50,001 nt of DNA from Macrostomum lignano (Eukaryota). The notes under the pieces are model-generated. The model worked only from the letters and a program-made list of their open reading frames with translations. It was not told the origin of the DNA and did no database searches. Shown here in pieces: positions 8,395-46,386 of this stretch (position 1 is its first letter; every line of letters starts with the position of its first letter). The position numbers and the translations under genes are program-made. The stretch covers positions 1 through 50,001 of the forward strand of contig NIVC01004336.1 of assembly GCA_002269645.1 (NCBI GenBank). The letters run 5' to 3'.

Positions 8395-11385
8395 TCAGAT
8401 AGGAGAGTCTGCTGCAGCAGTGGTTTGTTTGCAATCAAGACAAGCTTCCGTCCCCCAGCTTTGCTCTTTTTCTCTACTGGGGGGGGGGGTGGCGAAAATT
8501 CTAGTAGCCTTCTCCTTGAGTCTAGTGAGCTCCCTTTCTCTTGCCCTGTGGCGATTAATTGCCAACAGCATCCTCACCAGCTCAGATTGCGGCTTCTGCT
8601 CGTCTACTTTGCCTCCACTCCGGATGCACGAGATGTAAGAGAATTCGTGCGCGATGAACTTAGCAGTAGCAACTTTCAGACGGGTCAAGAGGTCAGAAAA
8701 CTGTGTGAGCGGGGTGTTCGTTGATAGTTGAGTGATTTGTACGCGACAAAACGTGTAATACGTGTAATAATATAGTCAGCACTCGTGCTTCACTGTGTCT
8801 TTACGCGCGTCACTTTATTCTCAAAATCTTGACGTAGCACCACCTCCGAATCTTGACGTAGCACCACCTCCGAATCTTGACGTAGCACCACCTCAGAATC
8901 TTGACGTAGCACCTCCGAATCTTGACATAGCACCACCGAATCTTGACGTAGCACCACCTCCGAAACTTGACGTAGCACCACCGAATCTTGACGTAGCACC
9001 ACCTCCGAATCTTGACGTAGCATCACCTCCGAATCTTGACGTAGCATCACCTCCGAATCTTGACGTAGCACCACCTCCGAATCTTGACGTAGCATCACCT
9101 CCGAATCTTGACATAGCATCACCTCCGAATCTTGACGTAGCACTACCTCCGAATCTTGACGTAGCATCACCGAATCTTGACGTAGCACCACCGAATCTTG
9201 ACGTAGCACCACCTCCGAATCTTGACGTAGCACCACCTCCGAATCTTGACGTAGCACTACCTCCGAATCTTGACGTAGCATCACCGAATCTTGACGTAGC
9301 ACCACCGAATCTTGACGTAGCACCACCGAATCTTGACGTAGCACCACCTCCGAATCTTGACGTAGCATCACCTCCGAATCTTGACGTAGCATCACCTCCG
9401 AATCTTGACGTAGCATCACCGAATCTTGACGTAGCACCACCGAATCTTGACGTAGCACCACCTCCGAATCTTGACGTAGCATCACCTCCGAATCTTGACG
9501 TAGCACCACCTCCGAATCTTGACGTAGCATCACCTCCGAATCTTGACGTAGCACCACCTCCGAATCTTGACGTAGCACTACCTCCGAATCTTGACGTAGC
9601 ATCACCGAATCTTGACGTAGCACCACCGAATCTTGACGTAGCACCACCGAATCTTGACGTAGCACCACCTCCGAATCTTGACGTAGCACCACCTCCGAAT
9701 CTCGACGTAGCACCACCTCCGAATCTTGACGTAGCACCACCTCCGAATCTTGACGTAGCACCATCTCCGAATTTTCTCGGTACACCTCCGAATCCCCACG
9801 AGGCTCCTCTTCCGGATCTTCATCACTGAATATATTGTCAGTTAACTGTAACTGAAGCTGTAAGCTGTGCTAATCGCTAAGAGTCTTAATCCTAAATCCC
9901 TGATGAGCAAGACCGAAAAAATAATTTCGGAAATGGAAGACAGGGATAGAAATACAGAGGTCGCAAAAAGTCACGAGGAAAATGACTCATAAATATGACG
10001 GAATTTGCTAAACCTGCGAGATAACTTTCCCACCGCCCCACAGCAGTATAGATATCAGAGATCCTCTCCGCTCGAGCGAGCTGATAACGTCCCAAATTGC
10101 CCAAATCACAGCTTCATCAAGTCTCGAGGAAATGAGTCAAGGAATATGCGGTAGAAAAATACTCAACAGCTACTAGAGCCGGAAGACTCAAGATATCACG
10201 TTCGAAAAAAGTTATAACTCGCTGAGCAGCCGGACTAAAGAAAGAAAGTAATATATTCGAGATATATCTGTGATATTCATTTTAAACTATTCCCCGTAGA
10301 TATGCAGTGCTGGAGAGAAGCACATTGGTTATCTATAACATAATGCCGGCCAAAGATGGGTTCAATTTAACTGCACTGAATTATTTGTCATCTTTTGATG
10401 GCGTTTGGCAATCAAATGCCACTGAGTTAGTAACAGAGCAGCTTCGGGAGACACGGCCTAAATCAGGGGTTGGAAAACTTTTTACCTAAAGGGCCAACTG
10501 CCGGCCAGAGGAAGAGAGAGAAGAGAGGGAACAGAGAAGAGAGATAGGAGAAAGAAGAGGCTAGAAATAAAGGAGATGAGAGGAGATAGGAAAATGCAGA
10601 TGAAATAGGAGGAGAAAGGAGAAGACAGAAGAGGAGAGGAGAGGAAAGGAGAGGAGAGGAGAGGGGAGAGAGGAGAAGAGAGGAGATAAGATGAGGTGAG
10701 GTTAGAGAAGACAGGCTTTGCGGGCCAGAGCTTGCCAACCCCTGGCGTAAATGATAGAGTTATAAGCGGTTAAAGTGCATGGGCAGAGCAGCCCTAGCGG
10801 TAAATCAAGGTACAATGGTTCGATTCGGTTAATTTGAGGCTTGTCTTGCACCTCACGCCCATGAGGGCCGACCCCTCACTCACACTCACTTACTACACTC
10901 TGCCTGGCGATTCGAAAGTCAGGGCGCTGTACACCCTGTGTGTGTTGAGTGCGGGTCTGCATATGTAAAGATGCGAAATGAGCGGGTAAAGGAATATCAT
11001 TCACCTGTAGATCGGGCCGCCATCACTGCTTCTCGAGTCCGAATGATGCAAGCCGCCGAGGCACATTCGTTGCCGCTTCTTGCGCTGACGCTCGCGCTGC
11101 GATTGTTGAGAATCTCGTCTAGAAAATTTGGTACGCACAAACCGTGTGGGCTCCTGGCAGTGCGGCTGCCGCTGCTGCTGCCGCTGCCGCTGGTGCTCGC
11201 GCAGGAACACCTCGTCGGAGTCGTCGTCAACTCCTTCGGCAGCTGCTGCCGATGCCGTAGCCGCCTTTTCCACCCCGGCTGCTGCTGCTGCCCGGGGATC
11301 GCGGGCACTCTTTTCTGGCGTGAATAGAGACAGGGCCAGTCGCCAATAGTTGCTGCAGGCATCGTGCAGCCATGGACAGAGGGTC
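8395..11385 (-). CDS. Partial spliced gene of unknown function; exons 11385-11005, 9825-8805 (or 8814) and 8700-8395; middle exon encodes ~40 RQDSEV(V/M)L-type repeats
   Basis: Exon 11385-11005: acceptor CCCTTCGCAG, open frame RTLCPWLHDACSNYWRLALSLF...DDDSDEVFLREHQ...GGPIY, donor AG|GTGAAT (phase 2). Next acceptor TATTCAG|T at 9825 (phase 2) gives S-DEDPEEEPRGDSEVYRENSEMVLRQDSEVVL. Donor CGC|GTAAAG or AAA|GTGACG (phase 0) joins acceptor CACACAG|TTT at 8700 (phase 0), giving FSDLLTRLKVATAKFIAHEF...; stop at 8395. Confidence 0.6.
8826..9790. repeat. Minisatellite, 24-bp unit GAATCTTGACGTAGCACCACCTCC with 21-bp variants, ~40 copies (probably coding on -)
   Basis: Directly visible tandem array; all length variants differ by 3 nt. 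Confidence 0.97.
10464..10744. mobile_element. hAT-type MITE with purine-rich interior (in intron)
   Basis: TIRs CAGGGGTTGGAAAAC / GCTTGCCAACCCCTG; 8-bp target-site duplication GCCTAAAT (10456-10463) / GCGTAAAT (10745-10752), 7/8 identical. Confidence 0.85.
10781..10955 (+). mobile_element. Family B repeat, copy 2, with tRNA-like head (probable second SINE family)
   Basis: GGGCAGAGCAG head, B-box GGTTCGATTC (10817-10826), then the ACGCCCATGAGGGCC...GAAAGTCAGGGCGCTGTACAC module. Confidence 0.6.
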
Positions 11386-14412: not shown

Positions 14413-14992
14413 GCCTATCCGTATACATGCTCGAGGGATCAGCGGGACTGGCCTGGCTGCTCGCCTCCTCACTACCTGTGGATCAACTGTCGCTTTGATT
14501 GGCGGCAGTTTCTGAATAACTATTTGTATTCCAACAGATAAAAGTTCGCGATCGAAAAAGGGTGGCTCAAAAAACGCAAAATCTTTTTCATCTACCTTCG
14601 AAGCCAGGCATCTGTGAGGACTGAGGGAGGTATAAAGAATGAATGAGGAAAAATCGATAATAAGTTTAGCTGAGCTGCCCAAACACCAAAAGATCGGTAG
14701 TCGCTAGTATACAGTCTGGCCATCGGATACAGGGCTCAGCCTAATAGTACAATGAAACTAAATCCTCCCCCGTAGGAAGAGCAGCTCAGCTCAGAGAATC
14801 GAGTGATGGTAAGAGAGTTCTAGAATTTCTACAGCCTCTCATATCTCTCTCTCTCTCTCTCTCTTCGAGTCTCTTCAGTTGAAGAAACAACCTAGGATAG
14901 TTTCTACTTAAGCTGAAGATATAAGCTGCTTAGCTTGTATGCTTTTGGTGGCCGCAGACTGGGTGCTGAGTTGCAGTGAAAGAATTTTGGTT

Positions 14993-15455
14993 TCAACCGC
15001 GCGGTCGGTGGGTGGCCCACGCCCGAGCCGCTGCACCTTGCTGTGTCAACAGAGCGTCCACCAAAGAGAGCTGGAGAGTGAGTGGCAGAGAAATAGTTTT
15101 AGCAAATGCAAACATGTCAGCCTTCCCCAGCTGAGAACTGATGTCGGATGCTTGAATTTTTTGCCCGTTGTGTGCGGCCAAAAATGATTCCAATTTTCTT
15201 CCTCTGGACTCTTCTGCAGACTGAGTTACCTCAGCTTCTTGTGGCTTGTTGGCAAGTTCCTCCTAGAGAAAGTTCCTCAGTAGCGCAAGGTTTTTTTAAT
15301 AATTTTTTTCAACAAGGCGTCTTACCTTCACTGAGCGACCGCTTCTTTGCGAAAATAGTACAATGGTCGTTGGCTTGGCACAATGGCTTGACGACACACT
15401 GCCGAAATGAGAGGGTTTGCAGGCAAGCAATCCACTCCAAACTTCAGTTGGCTAT
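14993..15455 (-). CDS. Candidate exons of an unidentified minus-strand gene (possibly upstream part of the 8.4-11.4 kb gene)
   Basis: Donor GTGAAG|GTAAGA at ~15325, acceptor TTTCTCTAG at ~15263, then the protein-like frame EELANKPQEAEVTQSAEESRGRKLESFLAAHNGQKIQASDISSQLGKADMFAFAKTISLPLTLQLSLVDALL. Linkage and phases not resolved. Confidence 0.35.
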
Positions 15456-15590: not shown

Positions 15591-15975
15591 CAAATGAGAG
15601 AGGACAGATACCAAATGAGAGAGGACAGATACCAAATGAGAGAGGACAGATACCAAATGAGAGAGGACAGATACCAAATGAGAGAGGACAGATACCAAAT
15701 GAGAGAGGACAGATACCAAATGAGAGAGGACAGATACCAAATGAGAGAGGACAGATACCAAATGAGAGAGGACAGATACCAAATGAGAGAGGACAGATAC
15801 CAAATGAGAGAGGACAGACATCAAATGAGAGAGGACAGATACCAAATGAGAGAGGACAGATACCAAATGAGAGAGGACGGATACCAAATGAGAGAGGACA
15901 GATACCAAATGAGAGAGGACAGACTTCAAACAAGAGAGGACAGGCACCAAGCGAGAGAAGACAGACATCCAATGA
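15591..15975. repeat. 21-bp tandem repeat CAAATGAGAGAGGACAGATAC, ~18 copies
   Basis: Directly visible; variants are non-synonymous in every open frame. Confidence 0.97.
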
Positions 15976-17169
15976 GGTAAGGCAGGCACCAGAGCAGACG
16001 GACATGAGAAACCTTACAGCTACATGTATAATGTAGTGATCATGGGAAAGTCAGCATGCATGTAAGCCTTCAGTTTAATAGAAGCTCTATAAAACAGCAG
16101 GAAGTCGCAGTATGAGGCAGATAAGGCCGCCCATGTGAAGAACATTGAGAGTTTCCGCTTGGCAGAGAAAATGCTCAGCAGCACGCGCACTCAGAGCTGG
16201 ATCTCCATGCATAGTATATACGAGCTATTTGCGTTGAAATGGGCTGCTCAAACAGAGTTTATTGCTCTTGATCACAGGCGCGGAGACTTGCGAGTGAATT
16301 CTACAGAGTCTTATTTTCGGTGGTTGCAAACATGAACCGTTTTTTTTTTGCATTTTTATATTAGCTCTACGCAAACGCATGGGTAGGTCAGGAACGAAGG
16401 CACTTTTCAAGTCTGTGTCTTGTTGGGACTGACCCAAAAATTACAAATTCAAAAGTTCAAATAAACACAACTTCGAATGAGAACGACGATATTTCCGTCT
16501 TGGTTGGTCTTAATCATAGATAATGGACTTCACGGATAACTAAAATACGAGTAGGACACTAGTTTCATTTAGAGTTGGTTTCCGCACCAAATTAAAACAT
16601 TTTTACAGAATGTGAGATTCAATTTAGACTACTGAGAAAAAGTAGTCGAATAAAGATTTGAATCGCAAAATCCCTCATACGAGCGTATAGGTTGGAGAAT
16701 GTCGCCAGAATAGAAATAACAGCACAAAATCAACGTCTGTACACACTGAGAGTGGGGGGACAGGACGGCAAGGGACTATTGCTGACTGACGAAATCCATG
16801 CACGACGTTCGATCCATACTTTTAGTGTGTCACACAGAACACAACTGCAGTACTTTTCTACTGTAACTACAGATCCAGATGGACCTCGAACAAAACAGAT
16901 AGTTGATTGAGATTGAAAAACTGACAACTAATGAAAGCTCGCTAGGTGCTTGGAAAGGTGACCACAGGACAGCATTCAGAAGACTAGCTTTGATGTGTCG
17001 TAAAGACCTAGACACCTGCACCAAGTTAATTTGTTCTCAAATCCTTCCGTACATTATGTACTTTATTCAAGCTGTACCTTTTTCACTTTGTCATCCTAAG
17101 TACTCATCTATCGTAGCCCAGTCCAAGGGGATGTTGCTGGGGATTCGAAGTGTACTGTAATGTCATGAT

Positions 17170-21218: not shown

Positions 21219-21493
21219 AAACCGAAAATAGAATAATTTGCGGCAGCAATGAAGATGGGATTCGTTTGTAAGTGTCAAAGTTTTTGCAAGGACACCTTAA
21301 TTCAAAGTTCAAAACAGTGCACTGCTGAGCGCATTGAAATCAAAATCACTTGAGAAGATCAGCAGGCTTCAGTGGCTCCAATCTGAAATGAACCAAAGCA
21401 ACGCATTTACTATTCAGTGTCTGTTAAAAAAGCAAGTTTAAAAAATGCTGCGCTCTATAGCGCGTCGCAAAAGATCTTACCGATTCCTCAGGA

Positions 21494-24008
21494 TCAGCGC
21501 TTTGTCCTGATCCCGTCTCCGAGCCAACGTTTGGTCCTGATCCCGTCTCCGAGCCAACGTTTGGTCCTGATCCCGTCTCCGAGCCAGCGTTTGGTCCTGA
21601 TCCCATCTCCGAGCCAACGTTTGGTCCTGATCCCATCTCCAAGCCAGCGCTTCGTCCTGATCCCATCTCCGAGCCAACGTTTGGTCCTGATCCCGTCTCC
21701 AAGCCAGCGCTTCGTCCTGATCCCGTCTCCGAGCCAACGTTTGGTCCTGATCCCGTCTCCGAGCCAACGTTTGGTCCTGATCCCGTCTCCAAGCCAGCGC
21801 TTCGTCCTGATCCCGTCTCCGAGCCAACGTTTGGTCCTGATCCCGTCTCCGAGCCAGCGCTTCGTCCTGATCCCGTCTCCGAGCCAACGTTTGGTCCTGA
21901 TCCCGTCTCCGAGCCAACGTTTGGTCCTGATCCCGTCTCCGAGCCAACGTTTGGTCCTGATCCCGTCTCCGAGCCAACGTTTGGTCCTGATCCCGTCTCC
22001 AAGCCAGCGCTTGGTCCTGATCCCGTCTCCAAGCCAGCGCTTGGTCCTGATCCCGTCTCCAAGCCAGCGCTTGGTCCTGATCCCGTCTCCAAGCCAACGC
22101 TTCGTTCTGATCCCGTCTCCAAGCCAGCGCTTGGTCCTGATTCCATTTCCCAACCACTTCTTCTCTTTGGCTTCAATGTGATCAGCCTCATCTACAGGCG
22201 TTAGTTTGTCACCCGAAGGTTCATTTCTGCCAACCGAGTTCCAACCAAACGAATGGACCTGCAGTAAAAAACAAGTTGAGTCACTTGAGTCAATTGAACA
22301 TTCGTAATTTTCGTAATTTACAGGCACTCTTACGTCTGCTTTCTCCTCGGCTGAAGCGATCCCATTATCTGAAAGAGGATAAGCGAAGGAAGGGCTGTGA
22401 ATTCCGCATTTTTGGGTATATTCGCTAATTTTCGGACAGCATGTTTTTATTGCTGCCACCAGAACAATTCTTCATCCAAGTTATTGTTTAGCAATTTGAC
22501 GATCATTATTCACATTTTTAATGCATAACAATCCATTACTACAAACAATGCATTGTCTGTAGGATCGTCAAACAGAAAAACAATGCAAAGAATCAGCGGT
22601 CGCAGCACGTGACAACGATTTGTCTATGGCTCGCGCCTAGAAAACCTACCGGCGCTCGCCAGACAATCGTTGTCACGCACTGGGACCGCTGATTATTTAT
22701 CCATTGTATTATCATAGAAAAACCGAGCTTGAACTAATTTCTATGGCGTAGAGAATTTCTGAAGGGACATCAGTATGCAGTGTTTACTGCAGCACACAGT
22801 GTCTTTTTGAAGACGATGTAGCAATGAAACTTATTGTATCAAATACCGCTACTAGGACTCGATCGTGAGCAAATTTTGATACTACTCAGCCGCCTCATCC
22901 TCTTCCTCTTCCTCATTGAAACTCTGACGCATTCCGCAGCAACAAAATTTTGAGAAAGCACTATTCAATCTTTGCTTGAAAATGTGTTAAAAATTGTTTC
23001 TAAATGGCAGAGAAGGTGCGAAATGGAAGTAAAAAGATGGAGTTCAGGATGGCATCGTGGACGATCGTCAATAGCATTCTAAACAGAGAGACAGACAAAT
23101 CAGATTATCAACTGTGCGGGCGAACAAGTCTGCCTGAGAAGAACCTTTCTTGTACTCTTCATAATTCATAGTCTGACAGCTAGGGCAGGCCAACGTTGTA
23201 AAGAAGAATGTATTTGTCTCACTTAAGATTTTATCATGTCTTTTAGTGAGTTCTTTAACGAGCTGCTGGGGGACTGGCTGGCACGCTACAGCTGTCCCGA
23301 TTCGGTTTCTCGCTGCAATCGCTGAAGGAAGTTATTTTCTGTTTGACTGGGGAGTAGAAAATTTATTAACAAGCTGGCGATTGAGGGGCCATCAATTAAA
23401 ACAATCTAAAGAAATTGTCAATAGGATCGAGTGGATGCATCAATTATTATCGTGTGCAATTTAGCCCAGCCAAAATTGCAACGAAATCTTATTTTGTTGG
23501 GAGATAATGGATGAACAGATAAGTAGACTGTCGGATGATGGCATGCTTAGATGAATTAGGAAAGGAATTATACTTTAGTAAGCCTAATATTGCGCTGCTG
23601 ATACAAGCGGATAAACAAAGCATTACATGACTGGATAAATAGACCATTACATGACTAGATAAATAGCCATTACATTACTAGATGAGTAGACCATTACATG
23701 ACTAGATGAGCAGACCATTACATGACTAGATGAGCAGACCATTACATGACTAGATGAGCAGGCCATTACATGACTAGATGAGCAGACCATTACATGACTA
23801 GATGAGCAGGCCATTACCTGACTAGATTAGTAGACCATTACATGACTAGATGAGTAGACCATTACATGACTAGATGAGTAGACTATTAAATGACCAGATG
23901 AGCAGAACATGGCATCACAATATGACCAGATGAGTGATACTTACAGCTAGTGGCAGTCAAAGCCAGAGTCAGCAGCAATAGCACTTGAGGCCGCATATGA
24001 AGCAGCAT
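21494..24008 (-). CDS. Secreted neuropeptide/peptide-hormone precursor, 287 aa; exons 24008-23945, 22368-22334, 22258-21494; 22 KR-flanked WLG(D/N)GIRT peptides
   Basis: Exon 1 MLLHMRPQVLLLLTLALTATS + T|GTAAGT (phase 1). Exon 2 after CCTCTTTCAG: AT-NGIASAEEKAD|GTAAGA (phase 0). Exon 3 after TTTACTGCAG: VHSFGWNSVGRNEPSGDKLTPVDEADHIEAKEKK-WLGNGIRT-(KR-WLGDGIRT)x21-KR-stop. Total CDS 864 nt; repeat variants are all silent in this frame. Confidence 0.88.
22581..22707. other. ~125-bp imperfect palindrome (hairpin / small MITE) in prohormone intron 1
   Basis: AATCAGCGGTC..CGTGACAACGATT.TGTCT ... AGACAATCGTTGTCACG..GACCGCTGATT arms. Confidence 0.8.
23621..23905. repeat. 24-bp tandem repeat GACCATTACATGACTAGATGAGCA, ~12 copies (prohormone intron 1)
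   Basis: Directly visible. Confidence 0.95.
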
Positions 24009-24341: not shown

Positions 24342-24907
24342 CTCTGTTTCACTCTGTTTCACTCTGTTTCACTCTGTTTCACTCTGTTTCACTCTGTTTC
24401 ACTCTGTTTCACTCTGTTTCACTCTGTTTCACTCTGTTTCACTCTGTTTCACTCTGTTTCACTCTGTTTCACTCTGTTTCACTCTGTTTCACTCTGTTTC
24501 ACTCTGTTTCACTCTGTTTCACTCTGTTTCACTCTGTTTCACTCTGTTTCACTCTGTTTCACTCTGTTTCACTCTGTTTCACTCTGTTTCACTCTGTTTC
24601 ACTCTGTTTCACTCTGTTTCACTCTGTTTCACTCTGTTTCACTCTGTTTCACTCTGTTTCACTCTGTTTCACTCTGTTTCACTCTGTTTCACTCTGTTTC
24701 ACTCTGTTTCACTCTGTTTCACTCTGTTTCACTCTGTTTCACTCTGTTTCACTCTGTTTCACTCTGTTTCACTCTGTTTCACTCTGTTTCACTCTGTTTC
24801 ACTCTGTTTCACTCTGTTTCACTCTGTTTCACTCTGTTTCACTCTGTTTCACTCTGTTTCACTCTGTTTCACTCTGTTTCACTCTGTTTCACTCTGTTTC
24901 ACTCTGT
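24342..24907. repeat. Perfect 10-bp tandem repeat (CTCTGTTTCA)n, ~56 copies
   Basis: Directly visible, no variants seen. Confidence 0.99.
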
Positions 24908-25493
24908 CCCTCTCCCTCTGTCCCCCTTCCTCTGTCCCTCTTTCTGTCCTAAACTTTTGTAAACCAGTAGTTTCTAATCTAGTATTACTCAAATAACATA
25001 TAATACAAAATAAAATCGGACAATTTTTGAGTCTAGACTCATATAGGTATATTATCGATTGAGGGTGTTGAAGTTCAATCTGCGGTGATAAAAAATGAAT
25101 TACGGCTACGGCTTTCTATCGCTACATTATAGCGATCTGTAATCGAAAATGGACCGCTTAGATAAAAATCTTTTTTACAACAAAATCAAACACCAACAAG
25201 TGAAGCAATGACATTGCCATTTATCAGCGTGAAAACTGTGCGACTCCTCTTTAGCAATTCTCATTGTCCAAAAATGATGCCATCAATTTGATTAGGTTTT
25301 ACTTATTTCTATTATATAATATTTTTACCACTTTTTCCCCGTAAAAGTTTTGCCTCTGTATTGAGCAGTACTGGCTTTCCGCTCTCTACTTTAATGATTG
25401 CCAACATCACGCGATCACCACGTTTAAACCTCCAGGTAATCGAATCAAGTTTTAGAGATGAAAATAAACAGATAGATAGAAAGATCTATAGAT

Positions 25494-26023
<530 letters not shown>

Positions 26024-26487
26024 CAGACAGTTAGACAGGCGCGGCAGGCAGGCGGAGGCGGGCAAACAGTCATGTGACGTGAGCAGAGCGGAAGCGAGGC
26101 TGGGGTGTCAACGGAAGCAGAGTTATAAAATACGACAACCCTGCCGCATCGCCCACATTTGGAAATGCTGGAAGTGCACGATCAGATAGATGATCCTGAA
26201 GCCAAATATAGCGAGACAAGTTCTCCAGGTAAAACTATCTAGCTCCTATTGTTCATAAACCTTCTATCTGGCAGCCCAGGTAGCCGGGGTAAAGTTAAAG
26301 GGAACAGCTTCTTTAGTCATTTGTTTGAATGAGCTTCATATCGCTTCATGCAAGGACTGTGAGTCAGTATAAAACGTGCGACTTGTTCTCTTGCTACATG
26401 TAACTACATTAGAAAGATATCAAAAATTGGCAATAGATAGATTTGACAATTGGGTAATAATTTTGATATTTTTGGATTGTAGATTAA

Positions 26488-30395: not shown

Positions 30396-31757
30396 TAGTA
30401 ACTAAGCTACTCTAAAGAAGCCTAAATTATCCATTTGTACAATCCAGAAAAAAATTATGAAACTGCTTTAGGTTAAGTGAGATTAGTTTATTGAAAAAAA
30501 CGTTTAAGAAGGCTCGTTGACACCGCCATTAAAAATGAGGCGAGTTTTTATAATGGTCTTGTACTAATAGTTAGTTACACGTAAGTAGTACCTGGAGTGG
30601 ACGCGCCATTCTGTGGAAGCTCTGTGAGTTTAACTATGGCGATATCCACCAATAATATACAACGTACTACGGGCTAGCTGTAGATGATGCAGTGTGATGC
30701 TCAGCATTTTACCCAATAAGAAATAAAGTTATGCGAAGTCAATGAACACTTTTCCTGTGCGTTAACATTCACTAGCTTAGTGTAAATTACAATTGTTATT
30801 CAACTTTATTGACACATTTCGATAGAAAGAAAACGCACACAAGAATTTCACGAACAGTTTCGTAGAGTAAGTTGAATCCACGCGCATGTTTCAAATCGCA
30901 TTAATAAAAATTAATAAAACTAGGTCATTTCTGATAGGCCGTTGACGTTACATATAGATTGAAAACACTAAGGTATGCTACTACAAATAGTTTAATACAG
31001 CTTGCGTTAATAGTAGAACTAAAAGTACGTCTTATATATGTTATAGCATATTATATGTATATATTTCTAAAATATGAAAAATTTGGGATACAAAAATATT
31101 TTAATTAACATTGGCGCCTAGACAAACACAATATTAGTCAGCTAATGCGCTCGTAGTATGAAAAAATCAATTTGACCACTTATCACTAATGGAGGGAGGT
31201 TTCAGTCTTGACAATATAAAAAGACATATTTAGCTCTTAGGCTGTTTGCTACACTCAACAATAAAATGCAATCAGCGGTGCTTAATCGCTACATAATTAT
31301 CATTTTATACATGCACTTTTATTTCTCTATTCCGATAAGCGGGCAAGAACGAAATAAAAATTTAATAAAATTTAAGCAGCATGCCTTTATTACTACTTTT
31401 TTTACTAACAGTAGTTTAGGCGCAAATATCAATAGTAATTATCGGAGAACGGAAAAGGGGCACAGATATTTTAACCACATGTACCTATATACAAAACAGA
31501 TTCGGTTGAGTGCAAGTACTTAATTTTACATTGTAGGCCTTTCGTGTTTAGAATACAACAAAATGTGCAATCAACTACAGAATTAATCACACAGACTGAT
31601 AATTGACCAAAAAATATTTGGAGCAGAGGCAGAAACACAAAATCTTCCCTAGAAGCAGGACTTGCTTATTCAATTCATTTCGAGAATCAACGCTTAATAG
31701 ATTCTTCATAGGGCAGCTACAATTATATCTGAAGCAGCCCAGCAACTTAAATTATTT

Positions 31758-32134
31758 CTGATCCCTACAATCTGATCCCTACAATCTGATCCCTACAATC
31801 TGATCCCTACAATCTGATCCCTACAATCTGATCCCTACAATCTGATCCCTACAATCTGATCCCTACAGTCTGATCCCCTACAATCTGATCCCTACAATCT
31901 GATCCCTACAATCTAATCCCTACAACCTTATCCCCCACAATCTGATCCCTACAATCTAATTCTTACAATCTGATCCCTACAATAAATAATTCCTACAATC
32001 TGATCCCTACACTCTGATCCCTACACTCTGATCCCTACAATTTAATTCCTACAATCTGATCCCTACACTCTGATCCCTACAATTTAATTCCTACAATCTG
32101 ATCCCTACAATCCGATCCCTACAATCTGATCCCT
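31758..32134. repeat. 14-bp tandem repeat CTGATCCCTACAAT, ~27 copies, just downstream of the TULP4 stop
   Basis: Directly visible. Confidence 0.97.
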
Positions 32135-32240: not shown

Positions 32241-34847
32241 TCACTTAAGCCGCTGGGTGAGATTAGCCAGAGCCAAACCGAAGGCTTGCACGGGCGAGAA
32301 TGGCGCCTGAAAGTCCAGCGAGAATCTGGAGTCGGACGTTTTACCAAACTGCAACACCTGCTGGCCGTCCAATTCCAATTGGAAATTCTTCGCCGACTGC
32401 AGACTGACCCGGCCGTGAAAGTCCAACTGATAGACGTGATTTGCTTCGTTCCAATTCGGCTCTTTGTTAGTCATAACAAAGACTCGCGGGCCGGGCGGAG
32501 CGGCCGACGCAGCGCCGGCGTTGCAATTCGCCAACTGGCCGGACGAGTCGCCGATTCGCCTTTGTCGAAGTCGACGCGTAGCCGTGGTTGCCGAAGCAGC
32601 CGGACGCGATGACGGAATCGAAGAGGTTGGCGGCTGAGCTGCGGCAGTGGCGGCAGCGGAGACAACCGCTGACGTGCCCGACGGTGTGCTCGGCGCCGAC
32701 TGTCGCATCATCGACGGGCCGCCGGCGGAGGAAGCAAGGACAGCGACGGCCGGAGAAATAGTTGCCTTGGCGGCCAAGGCAGCCGGCATTGACTGCTCGT
32801 CGGTTTCGTCTTCCGAGTCGATGTGCCGCAGGTCTGACAGGCTGCCACCGTTGCCGCCGCAGCCACGCGAGGTCAATGGCGGAGAATTGTCGCTGAACAC
32901 TCGTCCGTGCCGTCTAGGATTCACCTGCGGCAATGACGGGCCGATGTCGGAAGCTGCCGATGCCGCAGACGGATTTGCCGCGGTCGCAGAGGCAGAGGCG
33001 AACGAAGCGGCGGCAGCAGGCGAGGAGCCGAGCTCAACCAGACGCAGAGTGAGCCGCCTCGGCTCCATGTGCAGAAAGGAGGTCCGATAATCCACAGAGC
33101 CGGCGTCCCTGGGCAGGCAGGAGCGCAAGCCAACGAACCCGAATCGAGTGCCCCAGAGATTGGCCGACACGCGCAGCAGGCCTGGGCCCGGAGGCGGCTG
33201 CTGCTGTTGCGACTGTCGATGAGCTTTGCCGGCTGCGACAGCCGACGATGACAACAACGACGAAGGCGTCGACAATTGCTGACAACGCCGACGACGCCTC
33301 GATTTTGGCGAGGCGCAGCCAATGTCTACAGGGCCATCATCTTCTTCCTCTTCGAATGCCTCGACGATTTCATTGTTAACATTTGAATCATTGCTCGCCT
33401 GCTGCTGCTGCTCCAGCAGCTCCCTGCCGGTGTCGCAGTCGCAGTCAACGTCCGGAAAGTCTAAATAATCGTCGGCGAATTCCGGATCGAGTATAAGAAA
33501 GTCCGGTCTCAGTTTGCCGCACCGACGAGCGACTAATAGGCGAACTAAACCGCCCAGGTACTCGAGCTGCAGTACGTAGCGAAGTCCGGCCTCGTCCTGC
33601 GGCCGGCCGCACCGGCTCAGTGTGCAGTGCAGTCGGGTTGGCGCCGGTCTCGAGCAGAACTCTCGAAGCCCGTCAACGCTCAGCGGAGGCAGCACCCCGC
33701 GCAGAGTGTGCAGCCAGGCCGATTCAACCAGGCGTCGAAGCGGCGCCGGCGCATTCAGAGCGGCGAACTGCCTCGGACAGGCCCGGGCGCACAGGTCCGT
33801 TAGGGGAGCAACCTGGGCGCTGACTCGAATAGTGTAGAGTCGCCTACCGGCTGACACGAATAATCGCCTGTCCGAATGCGCCCAGGCCAGGCCGAACTGC
33901 GGATAGGGTGGACGAAAATTCGGAGAAAAGCCCGGCGCTTGACAGTACCGCTCGGCTAGTTGTCTGCCAGCCCGGTCGAACACCAGCACCTTGAGCCGGC
34001 TGGTGGGATCATAGTAGGACCAACCGGCCGCCGCCAGCCATTCCCCGCTGCAGCTCCACTGGATCCGCACGCCAACTAGACCGGTGAGAATGCACACTAC
34101 CGGGTCCGTTGAGTCCGACATTGGCCCGCCGTCGTACAATCGAATCCGGCCGTCCGACAGAGCCACGGCCAGGATGAAGCCGCGACAGTCGGCGTGTCGA
34201 TCTTCTTCAGCTACTACCGGCGGCCGGGACTGCCGGTGTCCAGCCATTGCGGCGGTGGCGGCTCTGGCCACTGTATTGGCCGGATTGCCGCCCTGCAGGT
34301 GGAGCTGAAACTTCGGACAGTTCCATTCTAGGCCGGTGACGGCCCCGCCGCAGGGGATGCGATGAAGCATGGGATGCTGGCCGGCGCTATTATAAGCCAT
34401 GATCTCGCCTGCTGCGGTGCCCACAAATACTGTGGAAGATTAGGGGGTGGGGGCGAGTGCGGTAGCAGTGCTTCTTTGAAAGAAATCGAAAACCTATAAA
34501 AGTATACTAAAAGAACTAATAGTAAAATACTAATATTTGCTGGAACAAAGACCTACATACCAGACTAGAACTACAAAGACCCTACTCATCTAAAACTATT
34601 GCACAAAGACTTACACATACGAAATCTAAAAACTAGAATTAAGAAGGTGAGCGCCATCATTTTTTATGCGACATGTTTCGCCTCGCGTCAGGCATCTTCA
34701 GGCTCTTAAAATTAGTAACGATTTATTTGTTCATTTATATTTAACAATTAAGAGTAAGAACGGGTCGATAAAAGTCAGAAATGTATATAAATTAACAGTA
34801 GATTGTACAGTCCGACGGAGCGCTCACAGAGTTTCAATGAGGGGAGA

Positions 34848-34901
<54 letters not shown>

Positions 34902-37900
34902 GTGAGTGAGAGTGAGATGAGCACAAGTGTACACCTAGAATACTCTAAGGAGGGCACTGGCACCGTGATTGGCAAGTTGCTTATTTAGGATTGGTTTACG
35001 CGATTTTATATACAGGGCTTCAAGCACTTTTAGTCTGTACTCATTTGAGCACGCATGGATGGTGGAAAAGTTATCTATTTGGCTGTCACAGCATTCTTTG
35101 CATATCATCAGGTGGTCGTGGACGGCCGACATCTTTTGCCTATGTTCTCTACTTCTCACGTACAGGTGTCGGGTAGTTTCACCTATGTAGGTGATACTCT
35201 GGTCGCCAGAGCATTGAAATTGGTAAACGACACCTGCCCGTAAGGAGCTGGGAACGCGGCATTTCAAATTCTTAACAAAACGACCGATTTTCTCGCAACG
35301 GAAAGTGACCATGAGCTTCACATTTAAATACTTATTAAACGCTCTGATGAGGTTCTTTTTAAAATGAACAGAAGCAGGCCCATAGAAAGGAATGGAGATA
35401 TGGGTGCAATCAATCCTCAGATCTTTCTGTTCTTCCTTATTCTGTCTATTGTTAGGATTCGCGACTTTACCATCAATGAATTTCCTAATGTGGTAATCGA
35501 GGAACCGTTTCGGGTAGTTGTTTTTGGAAAAATAGGTGCTAATCAAGCAAATTTCTTCGTGGAAACTAGTCCAGGTGCTACAGATTTCGAAAGCCCGGTG
35601 GAGCATACCACGCAGCAGGCCCACTTTCCACTGGGTTGGGCAGAGAGCATTGAAGTTTAGCAGAAGACCAGTGTAGGTGGCTTTACGATAAACTTTGGTG
35701 GACACACAATCGTTTTCAACATTAATCTGAATGTCTAAAAAAGGTATAGATTTCCCACCTCCTTCAGCAGTGAACTTTATGTTGGGATGAGTGCTGTTCA
35801 AAATGTCTAAGAATTGGCTATAGTCAGTCCCTTTGTTGAAAACCAAAAGAGTGTCATCAACATATCTCTTATAGAATTTGGGGGCCGCATCACTCTTCAT
35901 CCATTCCTCTTCCCAATGAGCCAGACAAAGATTGGCCAAGGTGGGGGCTAAAGGGCTCCCCATGGCACAGCCGTCAATCTGCCGGTAAAGCTTAGTTTGA
36001 AACATGAAGATTCCGTTAGTGGCAAAGATGAGGAGTTTGCGGAAAGTTTCTTTGTCCAAATCTGGTTTCGAATATTGGAACACAGTATCAGTGGCAAGGT
36101 TAATTTAAAGTTTACAAAAGTTCAAATCAACATAGATTATAATAAATTCTTTCTTCCGACGCGTTTCGGTCCAACAATGACCATCTTCAGGGTCTGGTGT
36201 ATTTTTAACTCACACAACAACTTTATAAGTGAACAAATGTTAACTGTACAGTCCAAAGGGCATGTCATGGGCAGAATTTTCCAAAAAATGTTAAGCATAG
36301 ATTGCAAGTACATTGTTCAGACTAGTGCCTCTACTTAGAATACCTTGAGCAAATGGCCCGCACCACTATGGGAGAGCTGAATATTCAGATTAGGTTTTTG
36401 GTCTTTAATGTACATGGATTCAAGTATGTTGAGCCTAAAATCAGTTCTACACCGATCAATAATTTTAAACTGCTGAGTTTGCTCAATTTCGCAACAACTG
36501 TTGCAACAGAGCAGGTGGTCTTGGATAGCCGACCTTTTCAACCAATGCTCTCTGACTAAAAGAAACTAAAAGGCACCTGTACACCAGAGTCAGAGACTTG
36601 AATCCATGTACATTAAAGACCAAAAACCTAATCTGAATATTCAGCTCTCCCATAGTGGTGCGGGCCATTTGCTCAAGGTATTCTAAGTAGAGGCACTAGT
36701 CTGAACAATGTACTTGCAATCTATGCATAACATTTTTTGGAAAATTCTGCCCATGACATGCCCTTTGGACTGTACAGTTAACATTTGTTCACTTATAAAG
36801 TTGTTGTGTGAGTTAAAAATACACCAGACCCTGAAGATGGTCATTGTTGGACCGAAACGCGTCGGAAGAAAGAATTTATTATAATCTATGTTGATTTTAA
36901 CTTTTGTATTTCTCTGCCTGCTAAAGCGTGCTACCTTACCTCAATTTAAAGTTTAGTTAATTTAATTTAATTTAGTTAATTTAATTTAGTTTTTTAGGTG
37001 AAATCTAAAAACTACAGACTTACACATTACCAAATCTAAAACTACAAAGACTTACACATACCCAAATCTAAAAACTACATAGACCTACACAAATCCAAAA
37101 CTACAAAGACTACAAAAACTAAAAATAGCAACAAAGACTGATTCGCAGCTCACCAGAGCAGTCGCCGGGTGACCAGCAGACAGCCGTAATCCGAGGCGGA
37201 TTAGGCTCGGCATCGCCAAGTTCAACTAGAAACGACCATAGCTGATGATCGGAGAAATTGCCGCACAATAGCAGGCCGTCCAAAGAGCCCATCAGAAAGT
37301 TGCTGCCGGAACGGGACCAGCGGAAGCAGACGCTGGCGCTAGGCCGGTCGTTAATTAGCTCCAGACTCCAGCGCTGGCCGTCTTCGGAGTTCAGCCAGAC
37401 GTGCATAACCCCGGCCGAGCAGCCAGTTACTAAACGGCGCTGCACTTCGTTCCATTCGACAACGCAGATGCCGCTGTCTGGCGACGGCTCGCGGCCGTAG
37501 TCGTATAAATTGAAGTTTAGCCGCTCGTTAGCTTCGCAATCTAGCGGCCACTGTAGTGTTCGGATGCGAATGCTTGTTTAAAATATTAACCCGTAGATAC
37601 TTTAGTAACTGTATAAGTCACACTCGCAATTCAAGCGGTGTAGAGCGTCTACTCTTTTTTTCAGTAGTTTGTCAGCGCAGCAATACTTAAATTTAATGTG
37701 GCAGGAAAATTTCCTGGTTTGTGGCCTCGCAGCATTTAGGGGTCCAGAATGAGCAGCAGGTATTTAACTTGATGTACACAAGTGAATGCAAGACCGACGA
37801 AACTCAGCCTAGGGGGCAGCCCCAATCTAGCTCAGTCAATCAGAGAGCAGTAAGGAGAGAGATCGAAGTTAGACGGACGAAACCCAGCCTATGGGACAGG

Positions 37901-38242
37901 CCCAATTTAGCTCAGCCAATCAGAGAACACAAGTGGGCAAGAGGAAAACCAAGTTACTGTTTATCGGCCTGGATGGAGGCTGAGGTGCCATCCCTACAGG
38001 GTGAGGATGCTAATTTAATTTTCATTTTACTGCTCTAACAATAATTTTGCTACTACAAAAAACAATCGAGTGCTCACCATTTCTTTAGCGCAAGTTTTAG
38101 TCACACTGACAACTCCATTGGCATTGCCGCAGGCCAGCCAGCCATCCTCGGGCCTGTCCAGGTCCCAGTGCGGCATCCAAGACAGGTCGAGCAGCTCCGA
38201 GTCGCTTTGGTGCAATCTGGCCGTCTCCTCTAGAAGGTGCAT
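32241..38242 (-). CDS. TULP4: Tubby-related protein 4 (WD40 - SOCS box - Tubby C-terminal), 916 aa; exons 38242-38078, 37550-37154, 34429-32241
   Basis: N-terminus SDSELLDLSW...GWLACGNANGVVSVT, WSLELINDR, LHCTLSR...YVLQLEYLGGLVRLLVARRCGKLRPDF and C-terminal FVMTNKEPNWNEANHVYQLDFHGRVSLQSAKNFQL...QAFGLALANLTQRLK match TULP4. Canonical GT-AG sites with compatible phases (0, 1); CDS 2751 nt. Confidence 0.95.
34636..36104 (-). mobile_element. 5'-truncated Penelope-like retroelement (family A): RT C-terminal part + GIY-YIG endonuclease, 3' UTR with (TC)n and hammerhead
   Basis: ORF to 34935: YRQIDGCAMGSPLAPTLAN, YKRYVDD (RT), GVVYQFQC..YIGETTRHLYVRSREH...LEALYI...LNKQ (GIY-YIG). The in-frame sequence starts at INLATDTVF (36104) and lacks the upstream RT motif A (FDVxSLFT). 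Confidence 0.93.
34668..34703 (-). ncRNA. Minimal type I hammerhead ribozyme (PLE family A)
   Basis: GC-CUGAAGA-U-GCCU(GACGCG)AGGC-GAAA-CAUG-UC^GC: intact core, 4-bp stem II, palindromic stem III. Confidence 0.85.
36113..36558 (-). mobile_element. Penelope pseudo-LTR of a different family (B), direct orientation
   Basis: Encodes a GIY-YIG C-terminus (KRSAIQDHLLCCNSCC...ILESMYIKDQKPNLNIQLSHSGAGHLLKVF), homologous to but clearly different from the family A end, plus 3' UTR and hammerhead. Confidence 0.85.
36156..36192 (-). ncRNA. Minimal type I hammerhead ribozyme (PLE family B, copy 1)
   Basis: CC-CUGAAGA-U-GGUC(AUUGUUG)GACC-GAAA-CGCG-UC^GG. Confidence 0.85.
36588..36908 (+). mobile_element. 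Inverted copy of the family B pseudo-LTR
   Basis: Near-perfect reverse complement of ~36113-36425, plus a short AGTCAGAGA match to 36550-36558 (internal deletion relative to copy 1). Confidence 0.9.
36829..36865 (+). ncRNA. Minimal type I hammerhead ribozyme (PLE family B, copy 2)
   Basis: CUGAAGA 36831-37, GGUC/GACC stem II, GAAA 36854-57, CGCG, UC 36862-63. Confidence 0.85.
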
Positions 38243-39539
38243 CCTTCCTCCCAGAGTATTTTTTTATTTTCTATTTAATATCTATACCTTCAGTTATAGA
38301 AACTAATTAGATAATAATCCAGGTATTATGTCCCACTTCAAGGCAAATGGATAAGAGAATTACAGTGTCCCAAGTCCGTCTGCCTTGGCTTTGGGGCTGC
38401 AATGTGTTAGAAGTAACATTTATTCACTAAATCCTTCACAATAATGTATTTTATTGCTTTCGTACCTAACATTAAGCAATACATTCTGCATGAGACAAAA
38501 ATCCTAAATAGGTAATACTTTAACAACCATTGAATTTGCCCCCCCCTCTAACTCATACATTACAAGATCAATTAATTTATAAAGGAAAAGTCACTTTTCA
38601 TAGATATAGTCTGGTAGGTCTATGCTTTAGGCATTTTAGCATAGTAACAAAGTCTAAAGAAAAGCACTATATAATAATTATGCATAATATAACTTTGCCA
38701 TATCTATAGCCAATGGTGTTAATGACCTCCTTTATTCTCTTCTATTCTGGTTTATTGTTTAGACAACATTCTGCTTTCACCCTCTGCAGAATTTGTATAA
38801 ACATTTTGTTATGCACACTTTTGGACTAACCTCACTAACTACATAAGAAATGCATGAAGAATGTATTGCAAACATTTTTATTGCTTATGTATAGCATTAC
38901 TTTTAAGGACCTATTTGACAGCTATTTTATTAATGTTCAATGTGACATTGCCAAAATATCCTTCTTAGCACTTGATTTATCTTAAACATTTTTTATGCAA
39001 TGTGACAGGGATTATCTAAGTTGCTTTATATTATATAGGGTCTTAATTATGTTTACCTGTAAAATATAGTTGCTAATCTAAATTTGCAGTGCATATGTAT
39101 TATATATTTACATTTATAAAATATTATATTTCTTTTTTGCTACTATATATCTATTGAATATTATGAGATATATCATCACAGAAAACAAAAACATGATTCA
39201 AGGTTACATTAAGAATGGCTAAAGGGGAATCAATTTTAGTCATAATATACACTATTATGCAAAAACATTTATTTAAGGTCTAGATGAAACAATTGCACCT
39301 TTTGTTAAAAGGTGTCCAAAACAAAAATTGCAAGAATGATTTATTTAGTCCTAGAAATTGAAATGTTATTGAATTTCAGATGGCTAAGCATTTTTAGAAA
39401 ACATACTTTTTGCCACATCTATATATCTTGTAGGCCTATTTCTAATATTATCTATACATCACTGAAACCAAGACCTTAATTGACATCTAGCACATTCAGT
39501 GTTAGGCAATTATGAGTAAAAGTAACAGTGCCATAATGC

Positions 39540-43780: not shown

Positions 43781-44988
43781 ATGGATCTTAAAAAAATTAA
43801 AGAAAGATTTTCTGAACTGAAAGTCAAAGACCATTTGAAGCAACTGATTTTTGAGTCCGAATCGCCCTCAAAGTTTGTTAATGAAGCGAACCAACTGAAA
43901 ATGGAAAAGCGATGGGCTGAAGCTGGCGACACGTTCATCAAAGCAGCTAAGGGCTTTCTTGGTCAGGCTAAATGCGAGTTCGATGCTTCCGACTGTCTGA
44001 GCAAAGCTGCCACCAGCTATCTGCTGCAGCAAGACCTTCGCTGTGCCATTCTCAGTCTGCAGGCGGCTGCGCGGCTGTACGCTGAGCTCGGCCAGTTCAG
44101 CATAGCGGCCGGACAGCACGAGAGAATTGCTGAGCTGGCTGAGAAACTCGAAGAGCTCAGAGTTCGTCAAGGCGGCGGCAACAGGGACCTGATGGACTGG
44201 GAGTCTGTGGAGGGCCAAGTCTCTGACGAACGAGCCAGCGAGATAAAAAACTTATGAAACTTTACCGAGAGAAACGTCCTCCTGAAAATAGATTTTATAA
44301 GGAAATTGGAAATCGTATGATAAAATTCTTCAAATTGGACAACAGTTCAAAGACAGGAGGCAGCGATCTGCAGAATGACGATCTGCAGAATGACGATCTG
44401 CAAGCCAAGACGCTGCATTTCAAGACGCCCAACAACTATCAGGCCACCCCCCGCACTGAAGAATTGCAGCCTGAAATGACAGGTGCGACTTCCGAAGCCA
44501 CAGCTGTGACTGGGCAACAGCAACCGGTGCCCGGCACTACCACACCGCTTCAACTGGCCCTGAATCACCTGGAGAAGGCGGCCGACTTCTTCGAGTCCGA
44601 GCAGAGCCCGGCCAGCGCCGCCGCCTGTAGCGACAAGCGAGCCCGCATCGAGGCGGACGGCGGACAACTCGACCGAGCCGCTGACGGCTTCCTCAAACTG
44701 GCCGACTGGGCGGCGAGCGACTCAATGCTGAGCAGCTGCGTCACAGACTATGCGTTCAAAGCCTGCCTGTGCGAGCTGGCAGCCGCTAGCCGATCCGACA
44801 GGCTTCAGTCTGGACTGCGGCACCTCGGCCGGAGCGACGAGGCCGACCTCGTCAAGGCTTTGGCTGGAGCTACGAGCGTTGCCGCCTTCGACGAAGCGCT
44901 GATCGCCTTCCAGAGATTCAACAACGTCGACGACTGGTGCGAGAGACGCCTGAAGGAGGTCAAAGGTCGCCTACCCCCTTCGACTTGA
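43781..44988 (+). CDS. Divergent alpha-SNAP (NSF attachment protein)-like paralog 1; split into two frames (43781-44257, 44254-44988) by an insertion/intron or frameshift
   Basis: EANQLKMEKRWAEAGDTFIKAA...YAELGQFSIAAGQHERIAEL and ALNHLEKAADFFESEQSPASAAAC...DYAFKACLC...NVDDWCERRLKEVK align with alpha-SNAP ([54 protein letters not shown]; RLDQW). Confidence 0.8.
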
Positions 44989-45381: not shown

Positions 45382-46377
45382 GCTAGATTAGCAATCCAGC
45401 AACAGGCCTTCATAACCAACAGCTAGATTAGCAATCCAGCAACAGGCCTTCATAACCAACAGCTAGATTAGCAATCCTACAACAGGCCTCCAAAACCAAC
45501 AGCTAGATTAGCAATCCAACAACAGGCCTTCATAACCAACAGCTAGATTAGCAATCAGAAACAGGCCTCCATAACCAACAGCTAGATTAGCAATCCAGAA
45601 ACAGGCCTCCATAACCAACAGCTAGATTAGCGATCCAACAACAGGCCTCCATAACCAACAGCTAGATTAGCAATCCAGCAACAGGCCTCCATAACCAACA
45701 GCTAGATTATCAATCCAACAACAGGCCTCCATAACCAACAGCTAGATTAGCAATCCAACAACAGGCCTCCATAATCAACAGCTAGATTAGCAATCCAACA
45801 ACAGGCCTCCATAACCAACAGCTAGATTAGCGATCCAACAACAGGCCTCCATAATCAACAGCTAGATTAGCAATCCAACAACAGGCCTCCATAACCAACA
45901 GCTAGATTAGCAATCCAACAACAGGCCTCCATAACCAACAGCTAGATTAGCAATCCAGCAACAGGCGTCCATAACCAACAGCTAGATTAACAATCCAGCA
46001 ACAGGCCTCCATAACCAACAGCTAGATTATCAATCCAACAACAGGCCTCCATAACCAACAGCTAGATTATCAATCCAGCAACAGGCCTTCATAACCAACA
46101 GCTAGATTAGCAATCCAGCAACAGGCCTTCATAACCAACAGCTAGATTAGCAATCCTACAACAGGCCTCCAAAACCAACAGCTAGATTAGCAATCCAACA
46201 ACAGGCCTCCATAACCAACAGCTAGATTAGCAATCCAACAACAGGCCTCCATAACCAACAGCTAGATTAGCAATCCAGCAACAGGCGTCCATAACCAACA
46301 GCTAGATTAACAATCCAACAACAGGCCTCCATAACCAACAGCTAGATTAGCAATCCAACAACAGGCCTCCAAAACCA
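45382..46377. repeat. 40-bp minisatellite AGCTAGATTAGCAATCCAACAACAGGCCTCCATAACCAAC, ~25 copies, between the two SNAP paralogs
   Basis: Directly visible. Confidence 0.97.
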
Positions 46378-46386
46378 CAGCCCCAC

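Follow-up and report, generated by a model that had tools for sequence, protein, structure and literature searches.

A minisatellite-encoded multi-copy precursor that probably releases non-amidated W-peptides in the flatworm Macrostomum lignano

Among described peptide precursors, the closest analogue of the gene considered here is the WLD proneuropeptide of the annelid Platynereis dumerilii (GenBank JF811332; Conzelmann et al., 2011, 2013), in which a signal peptide is followed by about 20 copies of KK-WLD[NH]S[QH]F[KRN][DE]ED (PMC3890597). Mass spectrometry detected the WLD peptides, which are non-amidated and affect ciliary beating, and the authors report no orthologues outside Platynereis (PMC3890597). 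The gene in question lies on the minus strand, from position 24008 to position 21494, of a 50,001-nucleotide stretch of the Macrostomum lignano genome (contig NIVC01004336.1, positions 1 to 50,001, assembly GCA_002269645.1), hereafter called the window. With a probability of about 0.72, it is a three-exon gene encoding a secreted polyprotein of 287 amino acids (aa) that is cleaved to 22 octapeptides, themselves likely to signal via a receptor. The likeness to WLD lies in the tandem, KK/KR-flanked and non-amidated 10-11-mers starting with Trp-Leu, in a nearby Asp and in a basic residue that comes right after an aromatic or aliphatic one. In contrast, the WLD peptides are longer, C-terminally acidic and devoid of the G-D-G core of the window peptide, and their precursor carries Cys-containing regions at both its N- and C-terminus, to which nothing in the 287-aa product corresponds. 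When the two precursors were compared by BLASTP, little beyond KKWL and the periodicity aligned, with a gap in every unit. Membership of the WLD family is not supported by the motif W-L-D-[NH]-S-[QH]-F-x-[DE]-[DE], of which the window peptide shares only K[KR]-W-L and the nearby Asp, and homology with Platynereis WLD is unproven.

Other families were considered on the same grounds. The Wamide/myoinhibitory family is defined by the spacing W-x6-7-W together with a C-terminal amidation signal (PMC3890597). The window peptide was not assigned to this family because it carries neither a second Trp nor an amidation signal, each peptide having a single N-terminal Trp and Thr, not Gly, before KR. To our knowledge, most of the flatworm peptides described to date are amidated, whereas the window peptide is devoid of such a signal. 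FMRFamide-like, pedal peptide/orcokinin-type and planarian npp/spp precursors present the succession predicted here, namely signal peptide, acidic spacer and repeated dibasic-flanked peptides. These generic multi-copy prohormones are processed by the prohormone convertases PC2/PC1 and carboxypeptidase E, and the sequence of the window peptide matches none of them. Besides, PC2 is documented in planarian and in M. lignano (PMC2953531, PMC4490696), the M. lignano homologue RNA815_2403.2 being expressed in the nervous system and its knock-down being lethal in juveniles (PMC4490696).

The gene model consists of three minus-strand exons. Exon 1 (24008-23945, 64 nt) begins with an ATG at 24008-24006, has a second in-frame ATG at 23996 and ends at a GTAAGT donor; it encodes MLLHMRPQVLLLLTLALTATS and the first base of a Tyr codon, which correspond to the n- and h-regions of a putative signal peptide. 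Intron 1 (23944-22369, 1576 nt, GT..AG) harbors a non-coding 24-bp minisatellite at 23621-23910. Exon 2 (22368-22334, 35 nt), bounded by the acceptor CGCTTATCCTCTTTCAG and a GTAAGA donor, completes the Tyr codon and continues with NGIASA/EEKAD, i.e., the c-region with A-S-A at positions -3/-1 and the start of the propeptide. A putative intron 2 (22333-22259, 75 nt, GTAAGA..CAG) separates it from exon 3 (22258-21494, acceptor CTTGTTTTTTACTGCAG). Cut in register, exon 3 comprises the acidic spacer VHSFGWNSVGRNEPSGDKLTPVDEADHIEAKE (22258-22163), one diverged first unit KK-WLGNGIRT (22162-22133), 21 tandem 30-bp KR-WLGDGIRT units (22132-21503) and a terminal AAG CGC TGA (21502-21494), in which the last Lys-Arg site is directly followed by the stop codon. 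Joined together, the three exons form an 864-nt coding sequence of 287 aa and a stop, with the layout MLLHMRPQVLLLLTLALTATSYNGIASA / EEKADVHSFGWNSVGRNEPSGDKLTPVDEADHIEAKE / KK-WLGNGIRT / 21 x KR-WLGDGIRT / KR-stop. This product contains no Cys and ends immediately after the last KR, and the propeptide that follows the leader counts 37 aa, 10 of them acidic and 4 basic. Downstream, an AATAAA at 21218-21213, starting 276 nt past the stop, is a candidate polyadenylation signal by consensus match alone.

The reading frame of exons 2 and 3 has no in-frame ATG and therefore requires a spliced-on upstream exon to be translated. The 7.5 kb upstream were searched for all open segments that start with ATG and run to a GTRAG donor, and the sole exon of this kind was exon 1, with its two alternative Met starts, 1.6 kb away on the same strand. 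Its length is 1 mod 3, and its phase is compatible with the acceptor at 22368 alone, which also has the best pyrimidine tract (87%). Over the whole window, both strands included, 54 ATG..GTRAG segments were found, and exon 1 was the only one to pass the threshold for a signal-like core, set at a mean Kyte-Doolittle value >= 3.0 over nine residues (3.12 over 9 aa for the leader). The GC content of the exons (0.48-0.60) is higher than that of intron 1 (0.40), intron 2 (0.35) and the 3' flank (0.385). Intron 2 is in frame and stop-free, so that the frame is kept whether it is spliced or retained, and its retention would give a 312-aa protein with an identical leader and identical peptides. Its low GC content and good splice sites favour splicing, which would make the gene three-exon, or possibly two-exon; the unspliced exon open reading frame (ORF) amounts to 321 aa. 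A first-pass annotation of this DNA had proposed these exon coordinates, GT-AG sites, phases and 287-aa ORF, and all were recovered when the minus strand was read and the exons were assembled.

The repeat was delineated by Tandem Repeats Finder (TRF) as an indel-free 30-bp array at 21504-22141, with 21.3 copies and 92% matches. Over the 21 core units (units 2-22), eleven nucleotide variants encode one single peptide: six columns vary, through seven distinct substitutions, all of them at codon position 3 and all silent. In the proposed frame, about 23% of all single substitutions that the unit could undergo would be silent, and the probability of obtaining seven silent substitutions out of seven is 3.8e-5, or ~2e-4 after correction for six frames. 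The first unit differs from the core units at 8-9 of its 30 nt (27-30%) and keeps 8 of its 10 residues; the two replacements put Lys in place of Arg within the cleavage pair and Asn in place of Asp, which leaves both cleavage site and charge class as they were. Two other indel-free arrays of the window with a period divisible by three were taken as controls, namely one of 21-bp units (15591-15976) and one of 24-bp units (23621-23910), and 13-44% of their substitutions are silent across all six frames (13-30% for the 24-bp minisatellite of intron 1 alone). These control minisatellites behave neutrally. The six variable positions and the codon pairs listed by the first-pass annotation matched our in-register alignment exactly, and purifying selection on the peptide, which it had deduced from them, is upheld by the silent-only substitutions, the neutral controls and the diverged first unit. 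Its statement that the same variants change amino acids in the other open frames was correct for the two other sense frames, with 0/7 and 1/7 substitutions silent, and incorrect for the open antisense frame VLIPSPSQR[LF] (ORF 21417-22181, plus strand), in which 5/7 are silent because antisense third codon positions coincide with sense third positions. A reading frame under peptide-level constraint is supported by these data, with selection on the peptide and its cleavage sites and not on the DNA, and the locus is very probably a real coding gene.

Related units were found elsewhere in the same species. An exhaustive phmmer search with exon 3 as query against 1.84 billion representative proteins gave 361 matches, and a motif scan of the best 150 of these 361 returned three proteins with a W-x-x-[DN]-G-x-R unit and basic flanks, all of them M. 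lignano UniProt entries. A0A1I8IJ38 carries 11 x KK-W[IL]GDGFRS, and both A0A1I8FF56 and A0A1I8FXQ2 carry KK-WLSDGFRN arrays. In unit-to-unit alignment, these paralogue units are 59-63% identical to the window units. Between the window peptide and the three paralogues, W, D, G, R and the basic pair do not vary, the other positions showing conservative exchanges (L/I, G/S, I/F, T/S/N, R/K), and the paralogues differ from the window peptide by F for I, S/N for T and KK for KR. In all three, an acidic spacer and KK stand ahead of the first unit. The corresponding database models are long chimeric or partly frameshifted ORFs in which no Pfam domain was found, and UniProt names two of them "ANK_REP_REGION domain-containing protein" and one "Secreted protein". 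With such wrong or generic names, the family is present in databases yet unrecognised. From these alignments, the window gene appears to belong to a small paralogous family in the genome, with the consensus W-[LI]-[GS]-[DN]-G-[IF]-R-[TSN] and dibasic flanks.

The other 147 of the best 150 phmmer matches were rejected as family members because they are without the W-x-x-D-G-x-R motif and its basic flanks; these are unrelated 10-residue-periodic proteins, with units such as KCWLLDSSIRT and KRNLGTGIRI from anonymous ENA/NCBI contigs, and such proteins make up most of the 361 matches. At the DNA level, the degenerate pattern W-[LI]-x-D-G-[FI]-R-x-K-[KR]-W gave three isolated matches and no arrays in metagenome contigs, which is consistent with chance. 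The Pfam families DAB2_SBM (PF21792) and Spt5 CTD (PF12815) scored against the whole protein with E-values of 2e-22 and 3e-9, respectively, with no single stretch significant, and both scores were discarded as an artefact because they are summed over 22 short repeat matches. An Rfam scan of the window gave no match.

As for the literature, the full and partial peptide strings, in all their variants, are absent from ~8.3 million full texts, and none of KKWL, KRWL, KKWI, KRWI, DGFR or DGIR occurs in the supplements to the census of planarian prohormones (Collins, 2010; PMC2953531). A word-indexed protein search with the 287-aa product and with the aligned paralogue unit types gave no match, a negative that carries no weight since the index missed A0A1I8IJ38, A0A1I8FF56 and A0A1I8FXQ2 despite exact shared 5-mers and seems to overlook tandem-repeat proteins in general. 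Besides, no contig was found on record that encodes the 321-aa unspliced ORF, a SNAP-family ORF neighbouring the gene in the window, A0A1I8IJ38 or A0A1I8FXQ2. The peptide itself is probably undescribed, its precursor being of an ordinary type. The earlier view, in which the peptide was recognised from no known neuropeptide family, holds as far as published papers and exact products in protein collections are concerned, and has to be amended for the three M. lignano UniProt paralogues, which have the same design and had gone unrecognised. It is in our view an even proposition that this gene, together with two or more other M. lignano loci, encodes a hitherto unrecognised family of "W-peptides" (W-[LI]-[GS]-[DN]-G-[IF]-R-x), non-amidated and perhaps confined to macrostomids, which are made in 10-22 copies per precursor and act as neuropeptides or hormones. 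Such a family would have been overlooked because amidation-based and repeat-masked searches are blind to genes of this kind. That the W-peptides are distant relatives of the annelid WLD peptides would be a more speculative proposal, and one that would turn WLD-type peptides from a Platynereis novelty into an old spiralian family.

The design of the precursor suggests how it would be processed. Its leader has a basic n-region with His4 and Arg6, then a hydrophobic core of 11 residues (VLLLLTLALTA), and the predicted cut follows A-S-A. All 22 units are dibasic-flanked, every junction reading RT-KR, with KK ahead of the first unit and KR-stop at the end of the ORF, and Arg occupies P4 of every cleavage site (R-T-K-R). 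This junction fits PC1/PC2 dibasic sites and the furin consensus alike, and the presence of Thr, and no Gly, before the basic pair implies that the peptides are not amidated. The first-pass annotation had described both this layout of leader, acidic spacer and dibasic-flanked repeats and the furin consensus with no C-terminal Gly; the former was borne out by a leader exon that is unique in the window and phase-matched, the latter by the register-cut units. According to this scheme, the leader (residues 1-28), cut after A-S-A by signal peptidase, would direct the precursor into the endoplasmic reticulum. Subtilisin-like convertases of the PC2/PC1 or furin type would then cleave on the C-terminal side of the first Lys-Lys and of each Lys-Arg, and a carboxypeptidase E/D-type enzyme would trim the basic residues. 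The expected products are one WLGNGIRT, 21 WLGDGIRT (computed [M+H]+ of 917.4839) and a 37-aa acidic propeptide, none of them amidated. The secreted octapeptide would most likely serve as an extracellular signal, as a neuropeptide or peptide hormone acting via a receptor. Its invariant Arg7 may owe its conservation to its place as P4 in the cleavage motif no less than to receptor binding.

The several parts of this reading do not stand equally firm. That the product is a secreted, cleaved multi-copy precursor is likely, whereas for a specifically neuronal or endocrine role the balance of evidence is level. The label "neuropeptide" is one that we infer, since a gland, seminal-fluid or pheromone peptide fits the identical anatomy. 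The strongest alternative is that the same gene and the same processing serve a non-neural source, either in the reproductive tract or in a gland, with prostate or seminal fluid, egg or sperm, and adhesive or rhabdite glands as conceivable sites; the peptide would then be a pheromone or attractant, or a mating or defence factor. The leader and the R-x-K-R junctions equally suit furin-type processing in any secretory cell, and the searches made apparently place the family in M. lignano alone, a narrow distribution that fast-evolving genes of reproduction or secretion usually show. Yeast alpha-factor and sea-urchin speract are established non-neuronal multi-copy peptide precursors, cleaved at basic sites by Kex2/furin-type enzymes. 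These belong to other kingdoms or tissues and have no sequence similarity to the window precursor, but they share its architecture, which is therefore no proof of neuronal origin. Against such a source, a short, net-neutral peptide strictly kept over 21 copies and in paralogues would more typically be a receptor ligand than a structural or antimicrobial product, and the nearest architectural match, Platynereis WLD, is a proven neuropeptide precursor. A non-neural source is on balance unlikely, without being negligible.

Alternatively, the product could be an uncleaved secreted repeat protein, the KR pairs being part of a charged decapeptide in a structural or matrix protein. Cleavage is predicted here, and unrelated proteins with 10-residue repeats are plentiful, as the phmmer matches illustrate. 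However, every unit of the array and of the paralogues keeps the basic pair, which is accompanied by Arg at P4. In addition, the ORF ends exactly past the final KR, and the array opens with KK right after the acidic spacer; together, these features are the signature of convertase substrates. An uncleaved product is hence improbable, and the cleaved precursor is preferred.

A further possibility is that the minisatellite is non-coding, its long ORF and upstream exon having arisen by chance. The window contains 38 TRF rows, i.e., about 30 distinct tandem arrays, several of which yield long ORFs in more than one frame, and the 30-bp array itself is open in 4/6 frames. Long ORFs being common in the repeats of this genome, an ORF is by itself no evidence of a gene. 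For instance, a 24-bp minisatellite at 8825-9772, with 41 copies and a higher-order 114-bp unit, is open over more than 330 codons on both strands (ORFs 8790-9785, minus strand, and 8795-9829, plus strand). However, the variation of the 30-bp array is silent-only, at a probability that chance would rarely reach, whereas the control arrays are neutral. Likewise, the diverged first unit keeps the peptide, a unique and phase-fitting exon supplies a signal-like core, and the paralogous arrays conserve the frame. A fortuitous frame is very improbable in view of these observations. Lastly, coding on the plus strand, where the ORF 21417-22181 would give a Pro/Ser-rich repeat protein of VLIPSPSQR[LF] units, can be dismissed as scarcely credible: this frame is open and tolerates most of the variants, and a phase-compatible ATG..GTGAGT segment lies 6.4 kb upstream (14939-15077), but its near-invariance is automatic from the third positions shared with the sense frame, two variants change L/F, 5/10 residues of its first unit are changed non-conservatively (VLIPFPNHFF), it has no in-frame ATG, its lone upstream candidate exon is without a signal-like core (Kyte-Doolittle 2.11), and the paralogues are conserved in the sense-frame reading.

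Returning to the cleaved, secreted signalling precursor, several points weigh against it. The call of a signal peptide is drawn solely from the hydrophobic core, the basic n-region and the A-x-A motif of the leader. R-x-K-R being also a furin site, processing outside the regulated neurosecretory pathway is possible. The silent-site statistic separates the sense frame incompletely from one antisense frame. In addition, the exact 287-aa and 312-aa products are absent from a collection of 15 billion proteins, and no orthologue was found outside M. lignano in collections that are poor in flatworm transcriptomes. The evidence for conservation consequently comes from within-genome paralogues, which are known as poor and partly frameshifted gene models.

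The surroundings of the gene are rich in repeats. A perfect 10-bp tandem repeat (CTCTGTTTCA) at 24342-24907, with 56.6 copies and 100% matches, starts about 330 bp upstream of the ATG of the gene, in the presumptive promoter region, and is followed further out by (AGAT)n with ~142 copies (25470-26035). The perfect identity of the 10-bp repeat over 566 bp suggests a very recent expansion or an assembly artefact. Beyond these repeats, a TULP4-like gene with a WD40 beta-propeller and a C-terminal Tub domain occupies 32241-38276 on the minus strand. Its 727-aa ORF (32241-34424, minus strand) is 100% identical to M. lignano BOX15_Mlig013252g1, which is carried by contig NIVC01005110.1 of the same assembly. 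This contig matches the window at 98.7% over 41768-30105 and then diverges; all similarity ends beyond 30105, and the peptide gene is absent from it. Just downstream of the TULP4-like gene, a 14-bp minisatellite covers 378 bp in the window (31757-32134) vs. ~1.6 kb in NIVC01005110.1 (~9635-11270); apart from this, the identity of the two is 98.7% over 10 kb. Such divergence could be an allelic, homeologous or assembly difference.

Within the span of the TULP4-like gene, a 382-aa ORF (34935-36083, minus strand) contains a reverse-transcriptase fragment (RVT_1, E = 1e-6, just under the Pfam cut-off) and, near its C-terminus, a GIY-YIG-like motif recognised by eye (VVYQFQC...YIGET...R..EH), features that suggest a Penelope-like retroelement in an intron. 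On the plus strand, two tandem copies of a SNAP-family gene (soluble NSF attachment protein-like) are found at 43781-44988 and 46387-47325, with near-identical C-terminal halves and, between them, 25 copies of a 40-bp minisatellite (45382-46381). Two overlapping ORFs (43781-44257 and 44254-44988) make up the first gene copy, a split for which a frameshift, an intron or a pseudogene could account. At the end of the window, the segment 48400-50001 has a GC content of 0.61 and overlapping long ORFs on both strands with poly-Gln, poly-Ala and acidic runs, and Pfam gave no match to it; the segment probably belongs to an exon of a low-complexity protein that extends beyond the window.

In terms of novelty, the new part of these results is the peptide and its unrecognised M. 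lignano family, while the architecture of the precursor is known. A multi-copy precursor processed by convertases is a very common type, and knowledge of the prohormone mechanism is unchanged by the finding. The locus also illustrates an annotation problem, coding minisatellites being repeat-masked or merged into chimeric ORFs, as a result of which multi-copy precursors, and non-amidated ones above all, are systematically under-reported. The comparison of silent-only variation with neighbouring arrays offers a cheap route for recovering such genes. M. lignano, a transgenic model among flatworms, is used to study regeneration, stem cells and reproduction, and the catalogue of its signalling peptides is still poor. 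The locus would yield 22 peptide copies, and further paralogous loci exist. Provided that the gene is real and expressed, a new family of ligands, abundant and easy to synthesise, would become available in this worm for RNA interference work and for the deorphanisation of receptors.

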